The translations under genes and the position numbers were made by a program. Below, piece by piece: positions 8,411-55,906 of a stretch of 64,000 nucleotides of DNA. The number at the start of each line of letters is the position of its first letter. Positions within the stretch are counted from its first letter, which is position 1. This DNA comes from Octopus sinensis. Taxonomy: Eukaryota. The notes under the pieces are model-generated. The model did no database searches. It saw only the letters and a list, made by a program, of their open reading frames with translations, and was not told where the DNA came from. The stretch covers positions 25,234,001-25,298,000 of the forward strand of contig NC_043004.1 in the NCBI RefSeq assembly GCF_006345805.1. Direction: 5' to 3'.

Positions 8411-8719
8411 AACAAGAGCACTAAGAGAGCGCAAACCTCTGCCAAGGCAACACCAACGTCCTCTCAAAGATTACCAGGAGATGATTTTTAAAATGAGAAT
8501 ATCTGAAATAAACTTGACTGCTCTCACAAACGAGAATCCAGAATCATTGTCTGATACCGGATCGATCCAAAAATCTAATCAGTTCATGCCAGTCATGAGG
8601 GGCAAACATCCCTGAAAGTTTCATCTGAATCTATCCAGTGGTCCTTGAGATATCTTGTCTATGGACAAAAACAAATATGACTGAAAACAATACCTCTGCC
8701 TTCACTAAGGCAGAGGTAA
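8411..8719 (+). mobile_element. Short non-autonomous element with terminal hairpin (Crypton-like?)
   Basis: Begins aacaagagcactaagagagcgcaaacctctgccaagg and ends with the perfect hairpin cctctgcctt-cact-aaggcagagg. The family assignment is from recollection only. Confidence 0.4.
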
Positions 8720-9394
8720 TAACAGTTTCAAATTTTGGTACAGGGCCAGCTAATTATGTGGAGAATTGATTACATTGGCTCCAGTGCTCAAGCAAAGTGA
8801 ACCTTGGCTGACTTTGAACTCAAAATACAAAAACCAGATGAAATGCTGCTAAGCACTTTGTCCAGTATGCTTATGATTCTGCCAATTTGCTGTCTTAATG
8901 AAAGAAATATCTTTTTCACAAAGGTAAAAGTTGGCCATTTCTGGAAGAAATATAGTCAATTTAAATCAACTTCATCACCCTTTAGCATTTAATCCAGCTA
9001 TATCTTGTCCAAATATTCTACATTTTATATTCAAACCAGCTAGATCTAGTCTCTCATATCTACCAAATAATGGACGATTAATTTTCAAAAATGTGAATAA
9101 ATAGGCATTATGTTACAGAGAGTAATCTGAATGCTAATGGGTTAACTGATACTTCTTTTAATTGACCCTTAATGGAATTTGAACTTGTAATGATTAGTGT
9201 TAAAGTGTAGTGGGTTACTAAGTGGAGCTGTGTTCAAGCCTTGTATTAGCCAAACAACACTCAGTTCATCATCATCATCGTTTAACGTCCGTTTTCCATG
9301 CTAGCATGGGTTGGCCAATAGAATGAGAACGATCTATCCCCATTCACTCCCATTGGATTTAATAATGGATTCGGTTCTAAATCCCAAGAACATT

Positions 9395-9880
9395 AGCACG
9401 TAAAAGCACCATCCGTTCGTGTCCGTTGCCAGCTCCGCCTGGCCTCCGTGCCGTTGGCACGTAAAACACCATACGCTCGTGTCCGTTGCCAGCCTCGCCT
9501 GGCCCCCGTGCCGGTAGCACGTAAAAGCACCATACGCTCGTGTCCGTTGCCAGCCTCGCCTGGCCCCCGTGCCGGTAGCACGTAAAAGCACCATCCGCTC
9601 GTGTCCGTTGCCAGCCTCGCCTGGCCCCCGTGCCGGTAGCACGAAAAAACACCATCCGTTCGTGGCCGTTTGCCAGCTCTGTCTGGCACCTGTGCAGGTG
9701 GCACGTAAAAAGCACCCACTACACTCACGGAGTGGTTGGCGTTAGGAAGGGCATCCAGCCGTAGAAACACTGCCAGCTCAAACTGGGCCTGATGAAGCCA
9801 TCCGGCTTCACAGACCCCAGTTAAACCGTCCAACCCATGCTAGCATGGAAAACGGACGCTAAATGATGATGATGATGATT
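9395..9880 (+). mobile_element. RTE-family 3' UTR fragment with ~5 internal ~60 bp tandem units
   Basis: Repeated gcacgtaaaagcaccat.cgctcgtgtccgttgccagcctcgcctggcccccgtgccgg units, then the family end plus (GAT)n. Confidence 0.8.
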
Positions 9881-12265: not shown

Positions 12266-12684
12266 GGTGGCGAGCTGGCATAAACGTTAGCATGCCAGGC
12301 GAAATGCTTAGCAGTATTTCATCTGCCACTACGTTCTGAGTTCAAATTCCGCTGAGGTCGACTTTGCCTTTCATATTTTCGGGGTTGATTAAATAAGTAC
12401 CAGTTACGCACTGGAGTCGATATAATCGACTTAACCCGTTTGTCTGTCCTTGTTCGTCCCCTCTGTGTTTAGCCCCTTGTGGGTAGTAAAGAAATAGGTA
12501 TTTCCTCTGCCACTACGTTCTGAGTTCAAATTCCGCTGAGGTCGACTTTGCCTTTCATCCTTTCAGGGTCGGTTAAATAAGTACCAGTTATGCACTGGAG
12601 TCGATATAATCGACTTAACCCGTTTGTCTGTCCTTGTTCGTCCCCTCTGTGTTTAGCCCCTTGTGGGTAATAAAGAAATAGGTA
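12266..12684 (+). mobile_element. tRNA-derived SINE family B (Meta-domain-like), with tandem duplication of its 3' two-thirds
   Basis: ggcgagctggca.aaacgttagca head, gttcaaattcc B-box, gaggtcgactttgcctttcatcctttc core. The segment from ~12320 is repeated at ~12500. Confidence 0.85.
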
Positions 12685-24544: not shown

Positions 24545-26378
24545 TCATCATCATCATCATCATTTAACGTCCGCTTTCCATGCTAGCATGGGTTGGACGG
24601 TTCAACTGGGGTCTGGGGAGCCCGAAAGCTGCACCAGTCCAGTCAGATCTGGCAGTGTTTCTACAGCTGGATGCCCTTCCTAACGCCAACCACTCCGAGA
24701 GTGTAGTGGGTGATTTTATGTGCCACCGACACAGGTGCCAGACGAGGCTGGCAAACGGCCACGCTCGGATGGTGTTTTTTATGTGCCACCGACACAGGTG
24801 CCAGACGAGGCTGGCAGACGGCCACGCTCGGATGGTGTTTTTATGTGCCACCGACACAGGTGCCAGATGAGGCTGGCAAACGGCCACGATCGGATGGTGT
24901 TTGTTACGTGCCCACAGCACGGAGGCCAGTCGATGCGGTACTGGCTACGGCCACGTTCGGATGGTTTTCTTGTGTGCCACGTGCCACCGGCACTGGTACC
25001 ACAAAGATACAAATTCCATTGATGTTCATCTATTTTGATTTGTTTTGATTTTCACTTGCCTCAACAGGTCTTCACAAGTGTCACAAGAAGGAAGGTATGC
25101 ACAGGTGGACTGACTACGTCCCAGGTAGGGGCCACAGGTTATGGCCTGACTAGTCTTGCCGGGTCTTCGGATGGTGTTTTTATGTGCCACCGACACAGGT
25201 GCCAGATGAGGCTGGCGAACGGCCACGATCGGATGGTGTTTGTTACGTGCCAGTCGGTGCGGTACTGGCTACGGCCACGTTCGGATGGTTTTCTTGTGTG
25301 CCACCGGCACTGGTACCACAAAGATACAATTTCATTAATGTTCATCTATTTTGATTTGTTTTGATTTGATTTGATTTGATTTGTTTTGATTTCATTTTGA
25401 TTTTCACTTGCCTCAACAGGCCTTCACAAGTATCACAAGGAGGAAGGTATGCACAGGTGGACTGACTACGTCCCAGGTAGGGGCCATGGGATATGGCCTG
25501 ACTAGTCTTCGGATGGTGTTTTTATGTGCCACCGACACAGGTGCTAGATGAGGCTGGCGAACGCCACGATCGGATGGTGTTTGTTATGTGCCCACAGCAC
25601 GATGGCCAGTCGATGCGGTACTGACTACGGCCACGTTCGGATGGATTTCTTGTGTGCCACAGGCACTGGTACCACAAAGATACAAATTCCATTGATGTTC
25701 ATCTATTTTGATTTGATTTGATTTGATTTTCACTTGCCTCAACAGGTCTTCACAAGTGTCACAAGAAGGAAGGTATGCACAGGTGGACTGACTAGTCTTG
25801 CCGGGTCTTCGGAAGGTGTTTTTATGTGCCACCGACACAGGTGCCAGATGAGGCTGGCGAACGGCCATGATCGGATGGTGTTTGTTACGTGCCCACAGCA
25901 CGGAGGCCGGTCGATGCGGAACTGGCTACGGCCACGTTCGGATGGTTTTCTTGTGTGCCACCGGCACTGGTACCACAAAGTGTGTGCCACCGGCACTGGT
26001 ACCACAAAGATACAGATTCCATTGATGTTCATCTATTTTGATTTGTTTTGATTTTCACTTGCCTCAACAGGTTTTCACAAGTGTCACAAGAAGGAAGGTA
26101 TGCACAGGTGGACTGACTACGTCCCAGGTAGGGGCCATGGGTTATGGCCTGACTAGTCTTGCCGGGTCTTCGGATGGTGTTTTTATGTGCCACCGACACA
26201 GGTGCTAGATGAGGCTGGCGAACAGCCACGATCGGATGGTGTTTGTCATGTGCCTACAGCACGGAGGCCAGTCGATGCGGTACTGGCTACGGCCACTTTC
26301 GGATGGTTTTCTCTTGTGTGCCACCGGCACTGGTACCACAAAGATACAAACATCTATTTTGATTTGTTTTGATTTGAT
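24545..26378 (-). repeat. RTE 3' UTR-derived higher-order tandem array (~300-360 bp units, 4 complete plus 1 partial)
   Basis: Unit starts near 24830, 25170, 25511, 25811 and 26171. Each has 60-70 bp sub-repeats, (GATTT)n and an RTE post-ORF segment. There is a single (GAT)n tail at ~24545. Confidence 0.85.
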
Positions 26379-32589: not shown

Positions 32590-33200
32590 CATACCTTTCC
32601 TTCTTGGGACACAAAACCCTACTTGTGAAGACCTGTTGAGGCAAGTGAAAATCAAAATCTAAATCAACATCAATGGAAATAGCAGCAGTGATACCAGTGC
32701 CGGTGGTACATAAGAGAACCATCCGAACATGGCCGTTGCCAGCGCCACCCCAAACTGGCCTCCGGTGGCACGTAAAAAGCACCATCCGATCGTGGCCGTT
32801 GCCAGCCTTGACTGGCCTCCTTGTCGGCGGCACGTAAAATGCACCATCCAATTGTGGCTGTTTGCCAGCCTTGCCTGGCACCTGTGCCGGTGGCACGTAA
32901 AAAGCACCATCTGATCGTGGCCGTTGCCAGCCTTGACTGGCCTGTGCCAGTGGTACATAAAAAGCACCATCCAACTGTGGCCGTTTGCCAGACTCGCCTG
33001 GCACCTGTGCCGGTGGCACGTTAAAAGCACCCACTACACTCATGGAGTGGTTGGCGTTAGGAAGGGCATCCAGCTGTAGAAACATTGCCAGATCATACTG
33101 GGCCTGGTGCAGCCCCCTGGCTTCCCAGACCCCAGTTGAACCGTCCAACCCATGCTAGCATGGAAAGCGGACGCTAAACGATGATGATGATGATGATGAT
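32590..33200 (+). mobile_element. RTE-family 3' UTR fragment with internal tandem units
   Basis: gtgaagacctgttgaggcaagtgaaaatc start, ~60 bp units, family end plus (GAT)n. A second short tail copy follows at ~33230-33405. Confidence 0.85.

Positions 33201-38444: not shown

Positions 38445-38450
<6 letters not shown>
38044..38450 (-). promoter_or_regulatory. 5' UTR/proximal promoter region of PAK1IP1
   Basis: Unique, CpG-containing sequence between the ATG and the start of the retrotransposon island. Inferred from position only. Confidence 0.5.
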
Positions 38451-38514
<64 letters not shown>

Positions 38515-38533
38515 TGATGATGATGATGATGAT

Positions 38534-39130
38534 AATGTACGCCACTAGCCCAGAAGGAATATAAGAGACGCCACGACAATATCGCCAGGCTTGTCCATTG
38601 AACACTTTGCAACAAGTATGGACTTGACAGAGAAAAAATTTGGTACGACCACAAACCTGAAGACATCTTCGAAAATAGAAATGCAAAGATCCTAAGGGCT
38701 ATTTCGATTCAGTGCGACCATGTAATAGAGAATAGGAAGCCAGACATAGTCTTAATTGAGAAAGAAAACAAATACTATGTTGGATCATAGATATAGCATG
38801 CCCAGCTGACAAGAAGGTATGCGATAAGGAAGAAAGAAAAGTTGAGAGATATGACAGGTTAGCTTGGGAAGTTAAGCACTTGTGATCGATGAAAAAGGTA
38901 GCAGTATTACCAATAATTGTCGGAGCCCCGGGAACAGTGAGCAAAAATCTCGAGAAGTACGTTGAACAAATAGGGGCTGCAATAAGGGTGGAGCACTTGC
39001 ACAAAACTGCACTGCTAGGAACTGCTCGAATACTCCGGAAGGTGCTCGAAAAATAAGAGGTGTTACCTTAGTTCACTGGTAGTGAACAGCTGACACTAGT
39101 ACATCTCAAGCGTAGAAGCTGTGCAAAGGC
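38534..39130 (+). mobile_element. R4/Dong-clade retrotransposon 3' fragment (subfamily 1)
   Basis: LAQKEYKRRHD...RKPDIVL...D..CP...K.ERY..L...KTALLGTARILRKVLE*, i.e. restriction-like endonuclease (RLE) motifs. Followed by (AAT)n. Confidence 0.88.
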
Positions 39131-39187
<57 letters not shown>

Positions 39188-39188
<1 letters not shown>

Positions 39189-39729
39189 GCTCTGGTGCTG
39201 GACCAAGTAGTGGCTCTCATGGCTTCCGATCTAAACTGATTGGAAGTATTATCATGTACATTGTTTTGTCTTGGTATAAAAGATGGGCTACAGCAAATAT
39301 TCTACTCAGTATCATAGATTTTCTTGTCAGTTGCTTGACCTTAACCAGTTGAGCATGTCTCTTGGTGGCTGACAATATGTGCATCTCTGATCACAAGCAG
39401 AAGTAGTTGGGGAGCATCATAGTCATGCGTTGATAGGAATTCTTCGGGGTTTGAATAATTCACCTCTGGAGACATGGGTGTTTCGTTCAACATCCTTAAA
39501 CAAATCTTATTCAGGGACCTTTTGAGCGGGATAGGCTTCTCGACCAGAAAAAAATTCTAACTGGACTCCACCTGCAAGGTCATGCCCTGTTTATCTTGAT
39601 ATGAGATAACTACGTCGCGCACATATCGCTGTGATGCATGTGCCTAGTGTACCTTTATCAGACGTAGTCATGATGGGTATACTGAGCTTCGTATATTTGT
39701 ACTCCAGTGTCACTTTGATGGCATGCACT

Positions 39730-39732
<3 letters not shown>
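39188..39732 (+). mobile_element. ~550 bp non-coding element in (TAA)n arrays, copy 1 (strand arbitrary)
   Basis: Homologous end-to-end with 42641-43184 and 43583-44133. Followed by (CT)n. Confidence 0.85.
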
Positions 39733-39802
<70 letters not shown>

Positions 39803-39811
39803 AATAATGAT

Positions 39812-40770
39812 AATCGTGAGCGAGATCTGCTATAGTATGCAAGGAAGGCTATAGTATACTGTAGTATGCTGGTAGAAGGATTTACTAACAATGAGGTTGA
39901 GAGTGCCAATGAATTCCAATCACGAGTTGCTACTCCCACGAAATTAACAACTTAAAAGACCAAGAAGAATCATGGATGTAATTCAATAAAGGTGTTCTTA
40001 AAGTGAGGACTGAAACCTGATCATCGCTGCCTAGGACCAGGCATCGAATACCAAGCACACTAATTCAATGAAAAACGATATTATACCACACATGTGCAAC
40101 GAACCTCAGCAGAATGTGTGGGAAGAAGGCTGATAGCATGACTCACATCGTTAGAGCTTGTGGAAGTCTTGCACAGAAATAGTACAAGCGTAGACGCGAC
40201 AAGGTATCATTAAGTCTTCACTGGCTACAATGCCAGAAGTGTGGATATAAGGTAACGGACGCCTCGTACCAACACAAACCGGAAAAGATAATGGACGAAA
40301 ACGAGTAGGCAAAGATTCTCTGGGACTTTGACTTCCAGACAGATAAGGTCACCGGAGGCCGGATATAGTAGCGTTTAAGAGGCACAAGCAAGAGCGCCTA
40401 ATAGTTGACGTGGCAGTGCCAGATCAATATATTATGAAAGAATGAGAAAAGACAGACAAATATGGAGACCTGAAAATTGAGATCGCCAAGATATGGCAGC
40501 TACGAGAGTCGAATGTAAAGGTGGGTCCTGTTGTCATCGGAACATTGGGTTCAATAGCGCCGAAACTGAAGAAGCGTCTAGACACTTCAGAAATACCTTA
40601 CTATCTTGGTGTGTTGCAAAAATTGGCTTTTTCTTGGAACTGCACGCATATTGCGTGAAGTACTGCCTGTCTCAGATCCTTGTGACATGGCAGACAGCAC
40701 AAATCCTTGGTGGACACAATATCATCAATCTACAACATCATAATATTGGATAACGCGCGACGTCTTCTTG
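39812..40770 (+). mobile_element. R4/Dong-clade 3' fragment, degenerate (subfamily 2)
   Basis: Degenerate AA.DQA, CCHC finger, KILWDF..QTD, RPDIV, VDVAVP, GTARIL motifs, followed by an (AAC)/(AAT)n tail. Confidence 0.8.
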
Positions 40771-40795
40771 AACAACAACACCACCACCAACAATG

Positions 40796-40843
<48 letters not shown>

Positions 40844-40860
40844 TAATAATAATAATAATA

Positions 40861-41087
40861 CGTGTGATGTGAGATTGTCTTAACTGGTACATCACACGTA
40901 TTGAGAAGAGCATTGTCGATGTGAGAACTGTTGCTGCTCATGTATTTTAAGTTAAAAAAAAAAAAAATGAACGAACTATTGAGTTTGGTTTAATGGCCTA
41001 CCAATGTATACTATGAGTTTCTTTGCCCTAGGAGTCGGGAAGACACTCGGCAAGAAATGGAAGCAAATTTGGAAGAAGAAAAAAAAA

Positions 41088-41088
<1 letters not shown>
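40861..41088 (+). mobile_element. R4/Dong-clade extreme 3' end (related to the 45598 copy)
   Basis: IVLTGTSHVLRRALSM* versus IVLTGTAHVLRRALSL* at ~46135-46185. Similar 3' UTR (gccctagg..acactcggc.agaaa.ggaag) then (AAT)n. Confidence 0.75.
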
Positions 41089-41127
<39 letters not shown>

Positions 41128-41739
41128 TGATGATGATGATGATGATGATGATAATAATAATAATAATAATAATAATTTATAGCACAAAAACAGAGCCGTA
41201 AATATATAGATTTATAAGAAGAAGTGGTTTGTCGATGAAATCGCCAGTTCTCAACTCGTACATTAATTATTCTTAACTCCAAGAAGGATAAAAGGTGAGA
41301 TGAAACCCCATTCCAAAGGGACGTAACTACATATATAAGATAATTTATTCATATCTCTACAAGTCTTTAGTTACGTCCCCTTTACCAGAGTTCGAATAGT
41401 GCAGTGATAATATTTATTTATTTATTTGTTTATTTTTTTATTTATTTATTTTTTTATTTTTTTATTTTTAAGGTGGTTCGCTAGCAAAGTCATTAGCACG
41501 CTGGACAAAATGCTTTGTAGCATTCCGTCCGTCTTCACGTTCTGAGTTCAAATTGCGCCAAGTTCGACTTTGCCTTTTATCGTTCGGAGGCCGATAAAAT
41601 ATGTACCAGTTAAGCACTCGAGTCGATGTAATCGATTTACCCACTCCCCCAAATTGTTGGCCTTGTGCCAAAACGTGAAATCGATATTTATTTATTTATT
41701 TATTTATTTAAGGCTGGTAGAATAGTTAGCATCGTGGGT

Positions 41740-42512
41740 ATGGCTTGAGCGAGGTGATTTGAGGCATACCACCGAAAGCCCGATCACTGCTGCACAAGAC
41801 CAGGCTCTCGCTACCAAGTCAGTAGAGTATAACATCTATAAAAACTTCTGACACCCAGGAATGCAGACTCTGTGGAAAGAGTGTGGAAAATGTGACCCAC
41901 TTGGTAAGTAGATGTGAGAGCCTTGCACAAAAAGAATACAAACGCCGCCACAATAAAGTATGTGGGTATCTTCATTGGCTCTTATGCCGTAAACACCAAT
42001 ATGAAATAACAAAGAACTGGTATGAGCAATGTACCAAGTAAAGTTATGCAAGAGGATGGAAAAGTAACGATACTCTGGTACTATGATTTTCAGACGGATC
42101 GTATAATTGAACATCTTCGGTCGGATGTTGTCGTATTGAATAAGGGAGACAAATACTGTTTGATCATTGATGTAGCTATACCAAATGACATGAATGTTGT
42201 GAGTATAGAGGTTGAAAAAATCACCAAGTACTCCGAATTGAAAGTGGAAATGACAAGACTGTATGGAATGCGAGAGGGTAATGTAAAAGTGATGCCAGTG
42301 GTAATCAGAGCGTTTGGGCTCAATCCCATTGAAACTTCAAGACTTTTTAAGGTAACTGGAAATCCCATGCAAGATTGATGTTTTGCACAAAGCAACCTTA
42401 TTGGGCACAGCGCATATCTTAAGGAAAGCATTATATGTCTAAGGTCTTATTTTGTGACTTGACAGGTGACTAAAGACTCCGGTGCATTTTTACCTAGACT
42501 GTGTTACGAGGG
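41740..42512 (+). mobile_element. R4/Dong-clade 3' fragment (subfamily 3)
   Basis: AAQDQAL, CRLC...H..S.C, ORF 42022..42378 (ILWYYDFQTDRIIEHLRSDVVVL...IDVAIP...EKITKYSEL). (AAT)n tail. Confidence 0.88.
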
Positions 42513-42522
42513 AATAATAATA

Positions 42523-42567
<45 letters not shown>

Positions 42568-42575
42568 TAATAATA

Positions 42576-42640
<65 letters not shown>

Positions 42641-42641
<1 letters not shown>

Positions 42642-43184
42642 GCCTGATGCAGTACCAGGCAGTGGCTCTCATGGCTTCTGATCTAACTGATTGGAATGTT
42701 ATCATGTACATTGTTTTGTCTGGTATAAAAGATGGGCTACAGCAAATATTCTGCTCAATACCACAGATGCTTGTCAGTTGTTTGGCCTTAACCAGTTGAG
42801 CATGTCCCTTAGTGGATGAGATTGTGCATCTCTGATCACGAGCAGAAGTAGTGGGGGAGCATCATAGCCATGTGTTGAGAGGGATTCTTTGGGGTTTGAA
42901 TAATTCACCTCTGGAAACATGAGTGGTTTTTTCAACATCCTTAAACAACCCTATTCAGGGACCGTTTGAGTGGGATGGGCTACTCAACCTGAAGAAAATT
43001 CTAACTGGGCCCCACCTGCAAGGTCATGTGCTGTTTATCTTGATATGAGATCACCATGTCGCGCACATATGGTTGTGTGCATGTGCCGGTGTACCTTTAT
43101 CAGACAGGTAGTCATGATGGGTATATTGGGCTTCGTATATTTTACCCCAGTGTCACTTTGATGCATGAACTGCTCTCTCACTCA
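42641..43184 (+). mobile_element. ~550 bp non-coding element, copy 2
   Basis: tgcctgatgcagtaccaggcagtggctctc...gcatgaactgctctctca, flanked on both sides by (AAT)n. Confidence 0.88.
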
Positions 43185-43210
43185 TAATAATAATAATAAT
43201 AATAATAATA

Positions 43211-43447
43211 TTCAGACAAATACATAACAAAAACACCTATTCAGACAAATACATAACAAAACCACCAGGACTTACAAACACATATAACATACAGAAAATT
43301 GCACTACTAGGCACTGCACAATCCTACGCAGAACACTTTCCATACAATAACCATCAGAGCATCACAACAAATCACAGCACATACCCAGGGCACACAGAGC
43401 TGTGCTCGCTAGTGAAGTGAAAGCACGCTATAAAAATAAAACTACTG
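43211..43447 (+). mobile_element. R4/Dong-clade 3' tip, same subfamily as the 47268 and 50040 copies
   Basis: KIALLGTA.ILRRTLSIQ* end and the same 3' UTR (...aaaactactg) plus (AAT)n. Confidence 0.9.
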
Positions 43448-43507
43448 AATAATAATAATAATGATAATATAATAATAATAATAATAACAATAATGATAAT
43501 AATAATA

Positions 43508-43582
<75 letters not shown>

Positions 43583-44133
43583 GCCCTGATGCAGTACCAG
43601 GCAGTGGCTCTCATGGCTTCTGATCTTAACTGATTGGAAGTGTCATCATGTACATTGTTTTGTCTTGGTATAAAAGATGGGCTACAGCAAATATTCTGCT
43701 CAATACCACAGATTTGCTTGTCAGTTGTTTGACCTTAACCAGTTGAGCATGCCCCTTAGTGGCTGACGATATGTGCATCTCTGATCACGAGCAGAAGTAG
43801 TGGGGGAGCATCATAGCCATGTGTTGAGAGAGATTCTTTGGGGTTTGAATAATTCACCTCTGGAAACATGGGTGGTTCTTTCAACATCCTTAAACAACCC
43901 TTATTCAGGGACCTTTTGAGCGGGATGGCCTACTCGACCTGAAGACAATTCTAACTGGGCCCCACTTGCAAGGTCATGCGCTGTTTACCTTGATATGAGA
44001 TCACCATGTCGCGCACATATGGTTGTGATGCATGTGCCTGGTGTACCCTTATCAGACGGGTAGTCATGATGGGTATATTGGGCTTCGTATATTTTACCCC
44101 AGTGTCACTTTGATGGCATGAACTGCTCTCTCA
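43583..44133 (+). mobile_element. ~550 bp non-coding element, copy 3
   Basis: Same ends and internal sequence as copies 1 and 2, flanked by (AAT)n. Confidence 0.88.
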
Positions 44134-44136
44134 ATC

Positions 44137-44186
<50 letters not shown>

Positions 44187-44705
44187 TGATGATGATTCTT
44201 TCTACTAAAGGTACAAGGCCAGCAATTTCGGGAGAGGGTCTAAGTTGAATACATCGACCCCAGTGATCAAATGGTATTTATTTTATCGATCTCGAAAGGA
44301 TGAAAGACAAAGTCGACCTCAACGAAATTTGAACTCAGAACGTAAAGACGGACGAAATGCCGCAGAGCATTTTGTTGGGTGTGCTAATAATTCTGCTTCT
44401 GCCTTAATAATAATAATCTATATGATAATCTGCTCGTTCGTTCGCCTGTATACTTGAGTAAGATAGGTGGAGTAAAAGTGAGAGAGAAAAGAGGGAGAGA
44501 GAGAAAAGAGGGAGAGAGAGAAAAGAAGGAGAGAGAAAAGGGGGAGAGAAAAGTAAAAAAAATGTTAACGCCGTGCGGTAGGGTGGGGAGGGGAGGATAA
44601 AGAGAAAGAGATATGTTTATGATACAATATTTAGCAGAGGGCGATGTTCTGGTGATGAAATTAATGAAAGGCAGACAGAAAGAGATGGACAGGGTAGGCA
44701 GTTAC

Positions 44706-44740
<35 letters not shown>

Positions 44741-44997
44741 GAGAGACAGGGACAGAGATGAAAAGGAGAATTGCATGATTAAAGAGTTTGTTGAAAAGGT
44801 AGAGAGAAACAGGGAAATATAAAATGCTTAGGTGAGGGAAATTTTAAGATCATATAATATACTGTGACTGGAAGTAAAATAACTAAGTAAAATAAAAGTA
44901 AAAATGCACCTCATCCTTTCTTTCTTAAATAGCTTCTCTCATTCCTTTTCGTTCTGTAGAATTTTTACGAGTCCCACCAGCTATAATAATAATAATA

Positions 44998-45038
<41 letters not shown>

Positions 45039-45555
45039 TAATAATAAAGTACAAACACTAACCACCATTAATCACGTAGACATTCCCATCCTTATACATA
45101 TAGACACTACTGTTTGTACAAGCCACACACAGACAAAAAACAAACATCGATCATACAGTATTTGAAGTACTTAAATTAATAATAATATTGGTGTTAACAA
45201 TGATAATGGTGATGATGATGATGAGGATGGTAGTGGTAGTGATAATAATAATTAGGCCCCTTAGCACACCGGGCGAATGGCTTAGCGGTATCTCGTCTGT
45301 CTTTACGTTCTGAGTTCAAATTCCGCCGAGGCCGACTTTGCCTTTTATCCTTTCGGGGTCGATAAGTTAAGTAGCAGTTGCGTACTGGGATAGATCTAAT
45401 CGACTGGCTCACTTCCCCAAAATTTCGGGACTTGTGCCCGTAAGCTGACCAAGCTAGCGCTGTAGAGGTCACATATATTCCGCTCCCCACAAAAATTATT
45501 TTCTTTTGCTGCCCACGAATTTTTTCAAAAAGCCGATCCAGCCAGCCAACCAGCC

Positions 45556-45597
<42 letters not shown>

Positions 45598-46332
45598 AAA
45601 TGGAGCTGACCCAAAATGCCGATTCTGTAACGATGAGATTGAAACAATAGACCACCTGATCTCAGGGTGTAGAGTCTTAGCACCTGCAGAATATAAAGCA
45701 AGCATGACAGAGTCGGCCAGTATTTACATTGGACAATATGTCGGCATTATAAAATCAAAACCTCTGACAAATGGTATAAACATCATCCTGAAGCTGTGAC
45801 TGAGGGAGAAAATGTGTCGATTCTATGGGACTTTCTCGTGCAGACCGACAGGACTATAAAAGCTAATAAACCGGATATTATTATAAAAGATCAGATAAAA
45901 AGGAAGTGTTCATTAATTGACATGAGTATTCCCTGTGATCACAATATAGCGGTGAAAGAATTTGACAAGATTAGTAAATATAAAGACATGCTAATAGAAA
46001 TTGAAAACATGTGGCATCTCCAGGCAACTACAGTACCAGTGATTGTAGGATCTCTAGGAATGATAAAAAAAAAGGTACTGAAACCTATTTGAAAATGATT
46101 CCAGGCTTACCATCCCTACAGGAAGTGCAAAAAATCGTATTAACTGGAACGGCTCATGTACTGAGAAGAGCACTATCGTTGTGAAAATAACATCCATCCA
46201 TGAATTTATTTATTTATTAATTTTTAAATACATATTTTATCTGTGAATTTGCGCGTGTAATCTGGGAATATATACAATGCCCTTCTCTGCCCTAGGTGTA
46301 TGGAAAACACTCGGCGAGAAACGGAAGAAAAT
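45598..46332 (+). mobile_element. R4/Dong-clade 3' fragment (subfamily 4)
   Basis: CRFC..EIETIDHLISGC finger and ORF 45796..46092 (ILWDFLVQTD..ANKPDIII...IDMSIP..KYKD). 5' side abuts (CTA)n, 3' side (AAT)n. Confidence 0.88.
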
Positions 46333-46353
46333 TTGAAGAAAGAAGGAAAGAAC

Positions 46354-46416
<63 letters not shown>

Positions 46417-46429
46417 GTAATAATAATAA

Positions 46430-46790
46430 TTGAAAACATTCCGACGGAGTCAAACAATTTAGTGATAACATCAAAATGGAAGTTGGGCTCGACAAATATG
46501 TCAAGGCAACATTTACCAAGGGAAAACTTAACAAACATACAACACCACTCATGACAGCGATACCGAGATAAAAGGACAGTTATATTTCGGAGTATGTGAA
46601 GGAGATGGAGTTAAACACTCACCAATGAGAGAAAAAAAAATAAGAATGAGTGCTACCGAAGATTAGTTGAATGCCAGACACAAAATTGAGGCTATAAACA
46701 TATTGGCCATGCCTGTAATCACATATAGCTTCAATATTATAAACCGAACCCTTTCTGAGTTCAACAAAGGTGACGGCAGACGAAACACCT
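46430..46790 (+). mobile_element. Degenerate R4/Dong RT-thumb fragment
   Basis: VKQFSDNIKME.GLDK..KATF..GKL and LNARHKIEAINILAMPVITYSFNII motifs, starting at an (AAT)n array. Confidence 0.7.
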
Positions 46791-46794
46791 ATTT

Positions 46795-47020
46795 CTTTAC
46801 TACCCACAAGGGGCTAAACACAGAGAGGACAAATAAGGACAGACAAACAAATTAAGTCGATTATATTGACCCCAGTGCGTAACTGGTACTTAATTTATCG
46901 ACCCCGAAATGATGAAAGGCAAAGTCGACCTCGGCGGAATTTGAACTCTGAACGTAACGGCAGACGAAATACGGCTACGCATTTCGCCCGGCGTGCTAAC
47001 GTTACTGCCAGCTCGCCCTT
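46795..47020 (-). mobile_element. SINE family B, young copy
   Basis: Reverse complement of the 53213 copy. Further minus-strand copies at ~41470-41680, 44200-44410 and 45255-45445. Confidence 0.88.
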
Positions 47021-47171
47021 GTCAAGCAACTGACAAGCAAATCTGTGGTATTGAGCAGAATATTTGCTGTAGCCCATCTTTTATACCAAGACAAAACAAT
47101 GTACATGATAACACTTCCAATCAGTTAAGATCAGAAGCCATGAGAGCCACTGCCTGTACTGCATCAGGGCA
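47021..47171 (-). mobile_element. ~550 bp element, partial copy 4 (inverted)
   Basis: Reverse complement of the first ~150 bp of copies 1-3, adjoining (TTA)n. Confidence 0.85.
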
Positions 47172-47190
47172 ATTATTATTATTATTATTG

Positions 47191-47248
<58 letters not shown>

Positions 47249-47267
47249 CATTATTATTATTATTATT

Positions 47268-49964
47268 CAGTAGTTTTATTTTTATAGCGTGCTTTCACTT
47301 CACTAGCGAGCGCAGCTCTGTGTGCCTTGGGTATGTGCTGTGATTTGTTGTGATGCTCTGATGGTTATTGTATGGAAAGTGTTCTGCGTAGGATGTGTGC
47401 AGTGCCTAGTAGTGCAATTTTCTGTATGTTATATGTGTTTGTAAGTCCTGGTGTTTTTGTTATGTATTTTTCTGAATATTTTTTTATCATGCCTAATGCA
47501 CCTACTATGATAGGAATTGTTTCTGTTTTCAGATTCCACATTCTAGTTACCTCTATTTCCAGGTCTTTGTATTTTGAGAGTTTCTCCATTTCTTTTAGAG
47601 ACACGTTGTCATCTGCCGGTATTGATACATCAATTAGAAGGCATTTTTTTTCTTCATGATCTCTGAGAACTATATCTGGTCTGTTGGCCTTAATTTCTCT
47701 ATCTGTGTGTATCGGCATATCCCAGAGTAAGGTTGCTTTCTCGTTTTCTGTGACCTTTTCTGGTGTGTGCCTATACCATCTTTTTTCTGTTGTTATTCCA
47801 TAATGTTGGCATAGCTTCCAGTGTATGTAGGTTCCAACTCTGTCATGTCTGTGAATATATTCCTTCTTAGCCAGGACTGGGCAGCTAGAGATAATATGAT
47901 TTATTGTTTCTTGTCCATCTCCACATATTCTGCAGTTACTTGTAATATTTCTTTTCATTACATGTTTTTGGTAATTTCTGGTGGGGAGGCTTTGGTCTTG
48001 TGCTGCAATTAAAAATCCCTCTGTTTCTGCTTTGAGTCCTGAGCTTCTCAACCATTGCTGGGATTTTTCTTTGTTTATTTCTTTTGCGTTTAGTTTAGTG
48101 CAGTATTTACCATGAAGGGGCTTTTCTTGCCATCGTTTTATCATGGTTCGTTGCTGTTCTATTTTTAGTTTGGATTTCATTTGTTTTATAGCTTTTGTTG
48201 TTTCTGTTCTTCTTCATCTTCTTCTTCTTCTTCTTCTTCATGTTTATTAGGTGGTATGATTTCTTTTTGTATTTGTCAGCTTCCTTAAATACAGAGAACA
48301 GTTTTTGTTTTGCTCGTGTTTTGCCGCTATCTGGATCAGTTTTCCTTCCTTCTGAAGTAGATATTTTTGCAGTCCTATGGTGGTTATTTTATAGTAGTTT
48401 TCCAGCTGTATAAGGCCTCTACCACCTTCTATACGTTGTATATATAGTCTTTCTATGTCAGATTTTGGGTGATGCATCCTAGATCCTGTCATTATTTTTC
48501 TTGTTTTCCTATCTATTTTGGTCAGTTCATTTCGTGTCCAGTTAAGGATATTGTAGCTGTAACTTATAACTGGGACAGCTAAAGTGTTGATACCCATTAT
48601 CTTGTTTTTGGCATTGAGCTCTGTTTTTAGTATTGATCTAACTCGTCTATAATACTCTTTTTTTATTTTCTCTTTCATTTGTGTGTGTTGTGTCTTATCT
48701 AGTTCATGGATTCCTAAGTATTTGTAAGTTTGGCTTTGGTCTAATTCTTTTATTTCATTGGTTTTATCTAGTGGGATGTTGTTACTCTTAACTAGTTTTC
48801 CTCTTTTCAGGGTTACTTTGGCGCATTTTTCTAATCCAAATTTCATATCTATTTCTTTGGTAAATCCATGAACTGTCTTTAATAGTGTTTCCAGCTGTTT
48901 GTCATTTGCAGCGTATAGTTTTAGGTCATCCATATATAAAAGGTGGCTGATCGTTTTGCCGTAACATTTATATCCGCATCCAGTTCTATTTAGTATATCA
49001 GATAGAGGTGACAGTGCCAAGCAGAAAAGGAGTGGAGAGAGCGTGTCTCCCTGGAATATTCCTCTTCTAATGGGGATGTCTTTGGTTTTCATGAGTCCCT
49101 CCTTTGTTTGGAGGTGTAGGACTGTTTGCCATTTATTCATAGAGTGCTCTATGAATTTTATGATTGTTGGTGCTACTTTGTTAATGGCTAGTGTTTCGAG
49201 GATCCATGTGTGGGGGATGCTATCAAACGCCTTTTTGTAGTCAATCCAGGCCATACTGAGGCCTTTCTTCTTTCTGTGGCTGTCTTCAGTTATGGCTTTA
49301 TTAATCATTAGTTGATCTTTACAGCCATATGAGCCTTTGCGGCATCCTTTCTGCTCTTCTGGGAACAGTTTGTTTTCGTCCAGGTGCTTGTTCAGCCTTT
49401 GTGATATCACTGCAGTAAATGCCTTGAGCATAGTAGGGAGGCAGGTTATTGGTCTGTAGTTTTCTGGTTTTTCTGTTTCATTTGATTTGGGAATTAAGAT
49501 GGTTTTCCCCTTCGTGAGCCATTCAGGCATTGTCTCTGGCTCTGCTAGTATGTTGTTAAAGTTTTCAGCCAGCTTTTTGTGCATTCCTGTTAGATATTTC
49601 AACCAGAAGTTGGGGATCTTGTCATGCCCAGGTGCCTTCAAGTTGCTTAGTCTTTGCAGTGCCTGGGTGACCTCTTCAGTTGTTATGGGGGTCCAAAGTT
49701 GTTCAGATGCCGAGTTTGTTATTTTGATACTCCTTTTTTTTGGTTGTTCGTTCGCCGACCATATTTCTCTCCAGAATTCTTCCAATTCTTCTGCCGTTGG
49801 TGCTGCAGTGACTTCTATTTTATTTTTGCCCTGTTCTTGGTAGAACTTTTTGGGGTTGGAGTTGAACTCTTTGTTTTGTTCAAAGAAGCGTTGGCGTTTC
49901 TCGTACCGGCGGATCCTTTGTGCTTTGGCAAGGATATCTTGCTTCAGCTTTTCTTTTATCTCAG

Positions 49965-49965
<1 letters not shown>
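47268..49965 (-). mobile_element. 5'-truncated, very young R4/Dong-clade non-LTR retrotransposon (RT, CCHC finger, RLE)
   Basis: ORF 48247..49785 has RT motifs (NYRPITCL, WIDYKKAFDS, GIFQGDTLSPLLF, LLYMDDLK). ORF 47365..48180 has CRICGD..ETINHIISSC and NRPDIV...IDVSIP...K.SKY. The frame is open up to the 5' junction at 49965. (TTA)n on both sides. Confidence 0.96.
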
Positions 49966-50039
<74 letters not shown>

Positions 50040-50042
<3 letters not shown>

Positions 50043-51678
50043 TAGTTTTATTTTTATAGCGTGCTTTCACTTCACTACCGAGCGCAGCTCTGTGTACCTT
50101 GGGTATGTGCTGTGATTTGTTGTGATGCTCTGATGGTTATTGTATGGAAAGTGTTCTGCGTAGGATGTGTGCAGTGCCTAGTAGTGCAATTTTCTGTATG
50201 TTATATGTATTTGTAAATCCTGGTGTTTTTGTTATGTATTTGTCTGAATATTTTTTTATCATGCCTAATGCACCTACTATGATAGGAATTGTTTCTGTTT
50301 TCAGATTCCACATTCTGATTACCTCTATTTCCAGGTCTTTGTATTTTGAAAGTTTCTCCATTTCTTTTAGAGACACGTTGTCATCTGCTGGTATTGATAC
50401 ATCAATTAGAAAGCATTTTTTTCTTCATGATCTCTGAGAACTATATCTGGTCTGTTGGCCTTAATTTCTCTGTCTGTGTATATCGGCATATCCCAGAGTA
50501 TGGTTGCTTTCTCGTTTTCTGTGACCTTTTCCGGTGTGTGCCTATACCATCTTTTTTCTGTTGTTATTCCATAATGTTGGCATAGCTTCCAGTGTATGTA
50601 GGTCCCAACTCTGTCATGTCTGTGAATATATTCCTTCTTAGTCAGGACTGGGCAGCCAGAGATAATATGATTTATTGTTTTTCGTCCATCTCCACATATT
50701 CTGCAGTTACTTGTTATATTTCTTTTCATTACATGTTTTTGGTAATTTCTGGTGGGGAGGCTTTGGTCTTGTGCTGCAATTAAAAATCCCTCTGTCTCTG
50801 CTTTGAGTCCTGAGCTTCTCAACCATTGCTGGGATTTTTCTTTGTCTATTTCTTTTGCATTTACTTTAGTTCAGTATTTACCATGAAGGAGCTTTTCTTG
50901 CCATCGTTTTATCATGGTTCTTTGCTGTTCTAGTTTTAGTTTGGATTTTATAGCTTTTGTTGTTTCTTCATCATCTTCTTCTTCTTCTTCATATTTGTTA
51001 GGTGGTATGATTTCTTGTTTGTATTTGTCAGCCTCCTTTAAATACTGAGAACAGTTTTTTGTTTTGTTCGTGTTTTGCCGCTATTTGTATCAGTTTTCCT
51101 TCCTTCTGAAGTAGATATTTTTGCAGTCCTATGGTGGTTATTTTATAGTAGTTTTCCAGCTGTATAAGGCCTCTGCCACCTTCTATACGTTGTATATATA
51201 GTGTTTCTATGTCAGATTTTGGGTGATGCATCCTAGATCCTGTCATTATTTTTCTTGTTTTCCTATCTATTTTGGTCAGTTCATTTAGTGTCCAGTTAAG
51301 GATATTGTAGCTGTAACTTATAACTGGGACAGCTAAAGTGTTGATACCCATTATCTTGTTTTTAGCATTGAGCTCTGTTTTTAGTATTGATCTAACTCGT
51401 CTATAATATTCTTTTTTTATTTTCTCTTTCATTTGTGTGTGTTGTGTCTTATCTAGTTCATGGATTCCTAAGTATTTGTAAGTTTGGTTTTGGTCTAATT
51501 CTTTTATTTCATTGGTTTTATCTAGTGGGATGTTGCTACTCTTAACTAGTTTTCCTCTTTTCAGGGTTACTTTGGCGCATTTTTCTAATCCAAATTTCAT
51601 ATCTATTTCTTTGGTAAATCCATGAACTGTCTTTAATAGTGTTTCCAGCTGTTTGTCACTTGCAGCGTATAGTTTTAG

Positions 51679-51679
<1 letters not shown>
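50040..51679 (-). mobile_element. Second 5'-truncated copy of the same R4/Dong element, in tandem
   Basis: Highly similar to 47268-48930. ORF pieces 51028..51600, 50406..50822 and 50137..50376. (TTA)n on both sides. Confidence 0.95.
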
Positions 51680-51731
<52 letters not shown>

Positions 51732-52054
51732 GATGTTATTTTTAGTTTTGCATTAATTTGTATGAATTGCACCCAAGTCTCAGCCAGAGACGTCAAGAGA
51801 CAACGAGGTTTTGTATTTAACGATGCTAGTAAATGAGGTGCCATGCAACTGAAAGCATTGATGTCTGTGAGAGACAAAATACAGAGTGCAAAAGATTTAT
51901 GTAGAATGTGTGAGATTGTGTGAGGAATTTACGTAGAATGTGTGCGATACCCATTAGTATGATCTTTTAAGATTCACTTATTTTGGAGCTGCTAGGAATT
52001 TGGTCTACATACGTGTTTGCTCCTCTTGATGCCATTCCAAATACTCCAGTAACA

Positions 52055-53212: not shown

Positions 53213-53440
53213 TGGCGACCTGGCAGAACCGTTAGCACGCCGGGCGAAATGCGTAGCCGTATTTCGTCTGCCGTTACGTTCTGAGTTCAAATTCCGCCGA
53301 GGTCGACTTTACCTTTCATCCTTTCGGAGTCAATAAATTAAGTACCAGTTACGCACTGGGGTCGGTGTAATCGACTTAATCCGTTTGTCTGTCCTTGTTT
53401 GTCCCCTCTATGTTTAGCACCTTGTGGGTAATAAAGAAAC
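53213..53440 (+). mobile_element. SINE family B, full-length
   Basis: A-box-like tggcagaaccg, B-box gttcaaattcc, conserved core, and a tail ending aataaagaaa. Confidence 0.88.
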
Positions 53441-55906
53441 AGATAAAGAAGCTGACGACCAATAAGCTGAAGATTCTGTTTGTAAACTGAAGATTCTATC
53501 CCCAGTAGTATTACTACTTCGCCTGAGATGATGGAGAGAATATGGAGGATGAGCAGAGTATCATACAATCAGGAACACTGGAATCAAAAAAGGAACAGAA
53601 ATAATAATAACGATGAGCCCTGAAAGAAAGCATGTTAAACAAATAAAGAGAACACACTCAGAATGACAAAATTCAAGGTCGTACGAATAAAAAGCAATTC
53701 GTTGCGCTAAGAGGGTGTACTGAACAGCACTTCCTCCCCACTATTCAATGGTGCACCCTCAGATTTACAGTGGTCCACTTATTTCGAAACTCCACTTTAG
53801 CATTATAACAAATTAGTGCTCACGCAGAATATTCTGAAGCACCCTCAGGTACTAAAGTCTGACGACAGGCCTGCCTTCTGAGCAAAAGTGAACGTTTGAA
53901 GATTGATTCTAATGGCGATCTACGGCTGATGGGGAAGAAATAGAGCGGTTCAAAGGAGAATATTGGTGAAGACTACACTAATGGCCTATCATACCATGAA
54001 ACTAACACTCCGGTAGGTTTTTTCTATTCTATACAACATTTACCAAAATATTCCTGAAGCGAATAAACATTAACTTGACATGATAATGTAAAAATTACGT
54101 TTGCCAAAGTTCTCAGTTTCGTTTGGCAAACCTCACATTCATGAGATTTCAAATACTTAATGTGTAACTAATTTTCGTTTTTCCTGGTTGGTGTTAGGAT
54201 TTTTATACCATAATTTCCCTTATGAAAATGGTGACCCCAAAAAAGACAAAGAAAAAACAATTTTATGCGTGGAGTGGGAAGAAGTCTACTTACCTCTAAT
54301 TTTAGAGATAAATGCATTTGTTTATCGTTTGGTGGTATTGTTGCATTATAAGAAAGAAAAAAAGAAATGCTGAATGTTATCTTTTAGTCTAACCACAGAG
54401 TTTTAATTATTACTTACTCAAATTACTTAAATCTAAAATACACGCAGAAAAATAAATCAACTAAAATCAAATCTATTTAGTGTCCTGTTTTTATTAGAAA
54501 CGTGGTAAAAACTTTTGTTGCTCCTTTCAACATAATTTGCTCACCAAAATGAATAAAGAAAAAATTCCTGGAGAGTGAGATGTTAAACGACACTCTTCTG
54601 TACATGTATTTTACTAATTTTCTAACAAACATGAGAATATGTTAGTAACACAATACTTGAAGTTAAATATAGCACTGTTACGAGTTGAATTCATGAAATG
54701 TCGAGTAACATGTAAAATCAGTTTCAGTACAAGTTGATGAGTTAATAGATATAGCAGTCTCATAGCCTTTCTTTCCGCTCCTTTCACGGAGGTCAGCTCT
54801 GGAAGAGCTTTAGTTAGATTGGTACTTAGTGATTTCACTACGAAAGAAGAGCAAGCAAAATATTACCTATGAATGGGAAAACAGCAGGTGTAGTTATTTA
54901 CAACTTACTTGTAGTGGATCTTGCATGCATGAAGTGGATTCGATCCACCACAGCCAAATTTAAATTAACACTGCAACAGAACTTTTCCCACGGTGGAACA
55001 ATGGTTTTTCTTTGACAGTAGTTTTACATTTTCCAGATGCCTTTAGCTAGGCCGAAATAATGTCTTCACCACTTGATCATTTCTAACCTCTTCTACTTCA
55101 CCAAAACTAGAATAGAGATAACAAGACCACCAGCTAAATCTATTTTTCTCAATGATATATCTATCTTTCTGTATGGTTATATAAGCGAGCACACTCCAAG
55201 CAAAATCAGTTAGTCACCAGCCGGGTAACGACTCAACCGCAGTTAGTCACCAACCGGTGACGACTCAACGAAGTCTGGCTGAACAACCTTGGTCAGAGGG
55301 AGAAAGCTACTGTGAGACAACACCCTACAATTCTCTCTGGCTCTAATTCTGTTCTCTTACAACATCATTCTATCTCTCTCCGTAATTACTACTAAACAAC
55401 GAAGAGGTCACAAACAAACTTTACTTCGCATGCTTTTGGATGTATCAAAACCTGCCCGTCGAGGCAAAGCATTTGTAACGTAACGGTAAATAAACATTTC
55501 CTTAAAACTTCATGCATTGTTCATCTTGCACATCTTACAATTTGCCGTCCTAACACTAAATATCATCATATTATTGTTTACCAATCAAAAATAAAGTCGT
55601 TACATACTCAAGCCACAAACTATGTACGCCGGGAAATCGTGCTAAATTGTGGTGTTCTATAGCGCAAAACTTAAGTCGACATTGAAGTCAGTGAAGCAAA
55701 AATCGAAGAGGAAATACATTTCACGTTACGGAATATCACGTTACAGCATGATTTTCATCGACGCAGAACTTCCGTAAAGAGTGGGTTTCTAAACAAGGTA
55801 ACTGGGACCACAACTGGTAGAGGCACTAGCAAGGGTTTGTAGTATCAAATTTCACTATGTCCTATATTTCATGTACTCAGCTACTTACTTACTAAGCAGA
55901 TTTATA

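Follow-up and report, generated by a model that had tools for sequence, protein, structure and literature searches.

Retrotransposons without long terminal repeats (non-LTR) that encode a restriction-like endonuclease (RLE) fall into clades that are mostly target-specific, and Utopia elements are sometimes found in tandem in U2 genes (PMC4640811). In most insects, molluscs and cnidarians, the target of the elements known as Dong is (TAA)n (PMC7998251). DongBg of the snail Biomphalaria glabrata is a published case of (TAA)n targeting (PMC3812793, citing Kojima and Fujiwara 2004), and in Bombyx a 5' ribozyme cuts the Dong RNA free of a (TAA)n co-transcript (PMC3774820). In the passages on Dong of three cephalopod studies, Dong-R4 is placed among the old, shared and abundant long interspersed nuclear elements (LINEs) of coleoids (PMC8967140), the repeat library of Octopus bimaculoides includes a Dong with a full open reading frame (ORF) (PMC9115989), and five recently active Dong-R4 families with 1,129 insertions are given for O. 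vulgaris (PMC13282606). These Dong passages mention neither target specificity nor microsatellite stacking, and in the available text of PMC13282606 the word 'microsatellite' occurs once, in a figure legend. Here we describe an island of such elements at positions 38445-51731 of a 64,000-nucleotide stretch of Octopus sinensis DNA (NC_043004.1, positions 25,234,001 to 25,298,000), referred to below as the window. The island very probably arose by repeated independent insertions into (TAA)n of R4/Dong non-LTR retrotransposons belonging to at least five lineages, accompanied by a 545-bp non-coding element that we call e545.

The island elements resemble the Dong family (Bombyx mori Dong, DongAg of Anopheles and DongBg; R4 clade) in the single ORF with reverse transcriptase (RT), CCHC motif and RLE, in the TAA repeats at both junctions and in the frequent 5' truncation (PMC3812793, PMC7998251, PMC3774820). 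They differ in that at least five lineages, with 32-55% mutual identity, share one locus and in that none of the copies is 5'-complete. They also belong to the same class as the coleoid Dong-R4 LINEs, a class that the Dong passages cited above characterise as old, common to the coleoids and active to this day (PMC9115989, PMC8967140, PMC13282606). R2 and R4 in ribosomal DNA (rDNA) and the repeat-specific Kibi, Koshi, Togen and Utopia are likewise RLE elements with a multicopy target in which tandem insertion is possible. The targets of those elements are a host gene array or another microsatellite, whereas the target motif in the island is the tail of the element itself, so that the element can renew its own target. 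A stack of this kind is predicted by the known insertion of Dong into TAA repeats and the island therefore illustrates a known behaviour clearly and introduces no new kind of element; (TAA)n targeting and the abundance of Dong-R4 in cephalopods were known, and e545 is the new detail. Our literature search, from which Kojima and Fujiwara 2004, the likeliest earlier account of Dong junctions, was missing, returned no description of multi-lineage stacks or of a feedback model.

All long (AAT)n arrays of the window are confined to this island of about 13.3 kb. Allowing up to one mismatch, we counted 172 matches to (AAT)8, all within 38477-51732, on the plus strand up to 46430 and on the minus strand from 47193 onward; the number expected from shuffles is zero. 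Outside the island, AAT-type runs are limited to four, each of 5-6 units. The arrays of the (AAT)n type sum to about 1,007 bp in at least thirteen pieces. Nine Dong fragments and four e545 copies make up the thirteen elements of our annotation, to which four interspersed copies of a short interspersed nuclear element (SINE) are added. The Dong fragments account for 8.3 kb of the 13.3-kb island and e545 for about 13%. The orientation switches a single time along the thirteen consecutive elements (P for at most one switch among twelve neighbour pairs = 0.003).

RT- or RLE-coding fragments were located by tblastn against the window, with copy H and five full-length relatives from other genomes as queries. 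The matches are restricted to 38536-51678, on the plus strand for fragments A, B, D, E, F and G and on the minus strand for H and I, and no fragment coding for RT, CCHC or RLE was found elsewhere in the window with these queries. Fragment C is the ninth piece, with the terminal codons and a 3' untranslated region (UTR) whose last 80 or so nucleotides match F. The motifs C..C...H...C, (K/R)PD(I/V)(V/I), (I/V)D(V/I/M) and K..KY are present in A, B, D, F, H and I, and RT parts are carried by G and I as well as by H.

Up to the orientation switch, the arrays (to 46430) and the elements (to about 46790) are on the plus strand. The left boundary of the island is a composite (ATG)n-(AAT)11-(ATG)n array (38445-38537), which forms the 5' junction of fragment A (38538-39130). 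This fragment, truncated at its 5' end and decayed by two stops and one frameshift, comprises the end of the CCHC motif, the RLE with the motifs KPDIVL and IIDIACP, and the 3' UTR, and its tail is a 100% pure (AAT)18 array (39131-39186) that also forms the 5' junction of the first e545 copy. Fragment B (about 39816-40791, the 5' limit being approximate) contains linker, CCHC, RLE and 3' UTR with three stops and frameshifts; its stretch 40005-40105 was read by eye. The tail of B, an (AAT)23 array (40792-40860), is at the same time the 5' junction of C (40861-41088), which consists of the last 16 or so codons and an F-like 3' UTR and ends in a (TAA)12(TGA)9(TAA)8 array (41089-41176). Fragment D (about 41732-42512) has linker, CCHC, RLE and 3' UTR with three frameshifts and one stop, followed by an (AAT)42 array (42513-42639) shared with the second e545 copy. 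The (ATA)9 tail of that copy (43184-43210) is the 5' junction of fragment E (43211-43447), a 3' end of the H/I lineage with 96-98% identity to H and I and an internal 29-bp duplication, and the (AAT)45 tail of E (43448-43582) leads directly into the third e545 copy, which ends in (AAT)16 (44137-44184). Fragment F (45598-46353) carries CCHC, RLE and 3' UTR with no stop and two frameshifts. An (ATA)25 array (46354-46430) joins it to fragment G (46431 to about 46790), which holds the RT part downstream of the catalytic YMDD and has lost its 3' part where the orientation flips.

Beyond the flip, arrays and elements are on the minus strand. The (TAA)n tail of fragment H reads as (ATT)32 on the plus strand (47172-47267), and H itself (47268-49965) includes RT with YMDD, linker, CCHC and RLE, 5'-truncated directly at a perfect array, (TTA)24 on the plus strand (49966-50039). 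This array is also the tail of fragment I (50040-51679), which is 5'-truncated just past YMDD and contains two frameshifts. The 5' junction of I is the right boundary of the island, a second perfect array, (TTA)17 on the plus strand (51680-51731), with unique sequence beyond. Three further segments were observed in the plus-strand part, none with a match elsewhere in the window: 41177-41412 has an AAT-type array on one side, and 44418-44982 and 45048-45175, which are separated by an (ATA)22 array (44983-45047), are bordered by arrays on either side. All three may be additional users of this target, decayed or unrecognised.

Eight of the nine fragments (A, B, C, D, E, F, H and I) run at their 3' ends straight into sense-strand (AAT)n. 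Sense-strand arrays also adjoin the 5' ends of seven fragments, in A as the composite ATG/AAT array, in B as a 15-bp remnant and in C, E, G, H and I as ordinary arrays. A preliminary description of the stretch had counted at least nine fragments of about five subfamilies within 13 kb and none clearly recognisable elsewhere in the window, with eight 3' ends in sense-strand (AAT)n, most 5' junctions at arrays, and element orientation and array strand flipping together at about 46.8-47 kb; all of this was recovered in our annotation, in which the switch falls between 46790 and 47020. It had also presented the copies as ranging from nearly intact to decayed. The better end of that range is represented by H, whose frame is open to the array at 49966 for 867 codons, interrupted by four stops that all lie in a short linker beside an internal (GAA)n; with these stops and roughly the first 340 residues of the full-length relatives missing, H falls short of intact, and no Dong copy in the island is autonomous. 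Within H, the ORF at 48247-49785 (minus strand) matches Pfam RVT_1 (E = 9.6e-33), and the ORF at 47365-48180 (minus strand), which is in the same frame, matches zf-RVT in Pfam. The (GAA)n microsatellite, (TTC)n on the plus strand, occupies the RT-CCHC linker in both H (48207-48239) and I (50964-50990). Since the four stops of H are all next to it, slippage there may have broken the frame.

The elements are of the RLE type, as indicated by the alignment of a full-length relative (P0001) with the solved R2 proteins from RT through CCHC to the KPD...D...K endonuclease (E = 1.6e-32). Judged by architecture, R2 alignment, relatives and target, they fit the R4/Dong clade to which the preliminary description had assigned them. 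The full-length relatives have about 1,200 amino acids and share 45-54% identity with the whole of H. No match to Exo_endo_phos, the apurinic/apyrimidinic (AP) endonuclease domain, and none to an N-terminal zinc finger was found in five of them; the island copies are all 5'-truncated. A Pediculus humanus element family (P0114) matches H with 45% identity across 99% of the length of H. That species, though not necessarily this element family, is among the R4/Dong-like representatives of PMC7998251. The exact 271-residue ORF of H is not on record, and the best protein relatives of H are only 54% identical. The R2 hallmark of insertion in the 28S rRNA gene is absent: Rfam finds no rRNA in the window, and the junctions all lie in microsatellite DNA. 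R2 proteins are also only distant matches, with E = 1e-32 compared with E = 0 for the Dong-like relatives. No ribozyme resembling that of hepatitis delta virus (HDV) was found by Rfam in the window or in the loci of four relatives, its models being ones that may not cover the Dong type, and a search of the 5' ends of the full-length relatives gave no match. Some full-length relatives have an N-terminal OTU-like cysteine protease domain, seen in P0017 as a Pfam OTU match below the curated cut-off (E = 7e-4) and in P0115 and P0117 as precomputed PF02338 matches.

The fragments come from several old lineages. No mutual DNA similarity was found among A, B, D, F and H at E < 1e-8, and the identity of their CCHC-RLE proteins is 32-54% by column count and 32-55% by BLASTP. 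F is 65-68% identical to foreign relatives compared with only 55% to H, and H is about 65% identical to one foreign relative; as each of the two is nearer to foreign relatives than to the other, their lineages must have split long ago. H and I are close: their DNA is 95.9% identical over 1,740 bp, and their proteins are 90% identical across the roughly 507 residues that they share and 95% identical in the 192 C-terminal residues. They are truncated at different 5' points, in each case with a direct junction to an array. The 238-bp 3' end E diverges from H and I, as these do from each other, by 2-4% in a star-like manner. At least five Dong lineages are thus distinguished by sequence in the island, with C placed near F, and with E, H and I forming one young lineage.

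The preliminary description had left out the four copies of e545 and the four interspersed SINE copies. Three full copies and one partial copy of e545 were found, all starting at the same base right after an array: e545a (39187-39730), e545b (42640-43183) and e545c (43583-44136) on the plus strand, and e545d (47021-47171) on the minus strand, which comprises the first 150 bp or so in inverted orientation and matches e545c at 98% identity. Copies b, c and d show 96-98% identity to one another, and e545a is an older copy with about 90% identity to the others. The three full copies share the 3' end CTGCTCTCTC, followed in b and c by ACTC or AATC and (AAT)n. In e545a the terminal CTCTCTC, which stands alone in the other full copies, is expanded to a perfect (CT)34 (39731-39799) that is followed by the 15-bp AAT remnant. 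The upstream neighbour of each copy is the tail of a Dong fragment, namely A, D, E and H, the last two being of one lineage and both having a GAT unit at position 6 or 7 of the tail.

No protein similarity was detected in e545 by tblastn with the Dong proteins, and, its (TAA)n tail apart, e545 resembles none of the Dong 3' UTRs, whether of A, B, C/F, D or E/H/I. Rfam returned nothing for a 5' ribozyme in e545, either at the gathering level or at E values up to 10. An HDV-like ribozyme at its 5' end was also tried with a double-pseudoknot descriptor, run without a positive control, and rejected: the descriptor matched copy a only, with weak G-T-rich helices, and matched 25% of shuffles. A scan of e545 for bacterial promoters and terminators was uninformative, and the 5' core of e545 and the 3' UTR of H had no matches in metagenome scans. 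Site-specific LINEs can be accompanied by short internally deleted or non-autonomous partners such as the SIDEs of R2. Like these partners, e545 consists of a short, non-coding sequence with fixed ends, and it shares target and orientation with the autonomous elements. Unlike them, it has a 3' end that matches none of the five Dong 3' UTRs of the island, and no 5' ribozyme was found in it. It is a candidate for a non-autonomous element that uses the Dong machinery; it may instead have been carried along when an H-lineage source was read through (3' transduction), or form a 3' module of that lineage located behind an internal (TAA)n.

The same arrangement was observed at the loci of seven relatives, those of Pediculus (L003), Diaphorina citri (L004) and Penaeus chinensis (L005) and four from ENA assemblies (L001, L002, L006 and L007). 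Sense-strand (AAT)n flanks the element on both sides in five of the seven loci and on at least one side in all seven; the single-copy relatives, those of Diaphorina and Penaeus, lie between two arrays. At L001, L002 and L006 divergent lineages are stacked head to tail with arrays between them, and the last of these loci also has a switch from AAT to ATT beside an inverted copy. As these stacks are co-oriented in the same way, stacking is not peculiar to the octopus island. The Diaphorina locus additionally contains 5S-rRNA-like matches at 1063-1176, 8498-8615 and 9048-9165 (up to 67 bits), near the Dong copy and an upstream (AAT)34, which may be 5S-derived SINEs or 5S genes.

The anatomy of the island, its strand rule, the independence of its lineages and the recurrence of the pattern in other genomes are the observations that an explanation has to accommodate. 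For the mechanism we draw on the known biology of R2 and Dong, from which the site of the nick, the pairing of the tail and the addition, rather than only the splitting, of target by insertions are inferred. The anatomy agrees with target-primed reverse transcription into (TAA)n. The C-terminal RLE would introduce a nick into the (TTA)n strand, the element RNA would pair with the nicked DNA through its (UAA)n 3' end, and the nick would then prime reverse transcription. Reverse transcription would often stop early and leave a 5'-truncated copy between TAA repeats on both sides, with the sense strand of the element on the TAA strand. Each copy would keep a (TAA)n array at its 3' end and the locus would be filled head to tail over a long time; with such arrays kept, it would stay a target or become a better one.

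Several points weigh against this explanation. No empty site was seen. The 5' end of D adjoins the head of a SINE and (TATT)n, and that of F a perfect (CTA)14, instead of (AAT)n. The counts of 5' junctions are not independent proof of targeting, because within a stack the array at a 5' end is the tail of the upstream neighbour; the junctions free of this dependence are the outer ones of A (38445-38537) and I (51680-51731) and those of the single-copy relatives in Diaphorina and Penaeus. The clade assignment was made by architecture, R2 alignment, relatives and target, and as the window contains no 5'-complete Dong copy, the N-terminal features of R4/Dong, a lack of C2H2 fingers that separates it from R2 and a diverged Myb/SANT-like domain, are unreadable in it. 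For the feedback part in particular, Tay et al. (PMC2887409) argued that the insertion of Dong into pre-existing repeats adds no repeats, an argument that counts against it. Beside the junction of F it was observed that the (CTA)14 array (45556-45597) is one base per unit away from TAA.

The preliminary description had interpreted the island as a landing pad that each insertion enlarges. Strand-specific targeting by several old lineages stands; the feedback step, in which insertions add target, is plausible and fits the array of about 1 kb in many pieces, the hint from tail variants and the stacks elsewhere; these observations fit repeated passive hits on an array maintained by slippage equally well. 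A stronger form of feedback, which we regard as tentative and rather less probable than its opposite, is that the Dong lineages with e545 as a passenger build and maintain a co-oriented (TAA)n niche in which fresh tails serve as targets and old lineages share one growing array. Elements without promoters would there be read through from upstream and then cut out as RNA. Such a niche would correspond, in microsatellite DNA, to R2 in rDNA or to the arrays of telomeric retrotransposons in Drosophila.

The best-surviving alternative, to which we give about the same limited credence as to the niche, is that one long-lived (TAA)n array maintained by slippage was hit many times, with insertions that only split it and add no target. 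The arrays are highly pure even beside old, decayed copies, as in the 100% pure array after A, which points to slippage or homogenisation rather than to inherited tails, and Dong insertion into existing repeats would not raise their abundance (PMC2887409). On the other hand, about 1,007 bp in at least thirteen pieces is long for a single ancestral trinucleotide array, and the GAT unit found at position 6 or 7 in both the E and the H tail hints at RNA as the template for the tail's near part; this hint is weak because GAT variants are common in the island.

Local duplication of one or a few ancestral insertions, by unequal crossing-over between arrays or by segmental duplication, is improbable for the island as a whole. 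The 95.9% identity of H and I over 1,740 bp and the 96-98% identity of e545 b, c and d are what it would predict, the unit of an H-lineage 3' end, an array and e545 occurs twice (E with e545c, H with e545d), and arrays on both sides would favour unequal exchange. It is opposed by the different 5' truncation points of H and I, each joined directly to an array, and by the neighbours of the four e545 copies, which are all different, so that at most a minority of the thirteen elements are duplicates. The absence of DNA similarity together with 32-55% protein identity means that A, B, D, F and H are not segmental duplicates; the possibility that all fragments derive from one insertion, which the preliminary description had set as a check, thus fails for the whole island and stays possible just for a few young pieces. 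Hardly credible is an indiscriminate accumulation of transposable elements where the genome tolerates them, with non-specific insertion and (TAA)n as a mere 3' tail, which the island SINEs at 41470, 44197, 45250 and 46789 might suggest: SINEs occur window-wide whereas Dong fragments are confined to the island, the 5' ends of seven Dong fragments and four e545 copies adjoin arrays directly and all are co-oriented with them, and the single-copy Diaphorina and Penaeus relatives have arrays on both sides. Independent insertion into (TAA)n by several Dong lineages and e545 remains our preferred explanation.

The orientation flip lies between 46790 and 47020, where the plus-strand fragment G is cut at about 46790 and is followed by a SINE, the truncated inverted e545d and the first (ATT)n array. 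The SINE at this point (46789-47017, minus strand) is one copy of a SINE-like repeat, about 200 bp long, whose core reads GTTCTGAGTTCAAATTCCGCCGAGGTCGACTTTGCC and which was also found at 12314-12684, 41470-41685, 44197-44400 (minus strand), 45250-45440 and 53214-53442. These copies are scattered across the window, unlike the island-confined Dong fragments; the one at 12314 is a tandem dimer with a period of 184, and the one at 53214-53442 retains an intact 13-bp target duplication, ATAAAGAAGCTGA. Since G and e545d are both cut at the flip, simple insertion is no explanation and some rearrangement is implied.

An inversion through the inverted SINE pair at 46789-47017 and 53214-53442, which are 91.7% identical, was ruled out as the 13-bp duplication of the right SINE, ATAAAGAAGCTGA, is intact. 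The minus-strand block (47021-51731) could nevertheless be an inverted part of a cluster that once had a single orientation, an origin we consider a real possibility, somewhat below an even chance. Truncation of both G on the left and e545d on the right, with the SINE between them, argues for such an inversion; besides the exclusion of the SINE pair, it is opposed by our finding that the lost parts of G and e545d are not present from 51732 onward. The alternatives are an inversion within one cluster and the growth of two clusters toward one another, and with either of them arrays and elements must switch together.

The remainder of the window is repeat-rich eukaryotic DNA. No Rfam match at the gathering level and no ORF of at least 130 amino acids outside repeats was found in the whole window. 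A minisatellite with closely related consensus units of 61-63 bp forms three arrays, at 9394-9716 and 32762-33031 on the plus strand and at 24714-24912 in reverse complement, and probably represents a repeat internal to a different family of transposable elements. Another repeat, at 25033-25729, consists of a 352-bp unit present twice with 87% identity and (TTTGA)n runs at its borders.

In annotation, such stacks should be divided by lineage and not collapsed into a single 'Dong-R4' call. The locus offers a compact and readable example of how target-specific retrotransposons confine themselves to harmless DNA, and it shows several old lineages coexisting on the same target. The stacks in other assemblies suggest that the niche could be a family-wide way of life. 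If the feedback were true genome-wide, it would explain the abundance of Dong-R4 in some genomes, the clustering of (TAA)n and the misbehaviour of nearby microsatellite markers.

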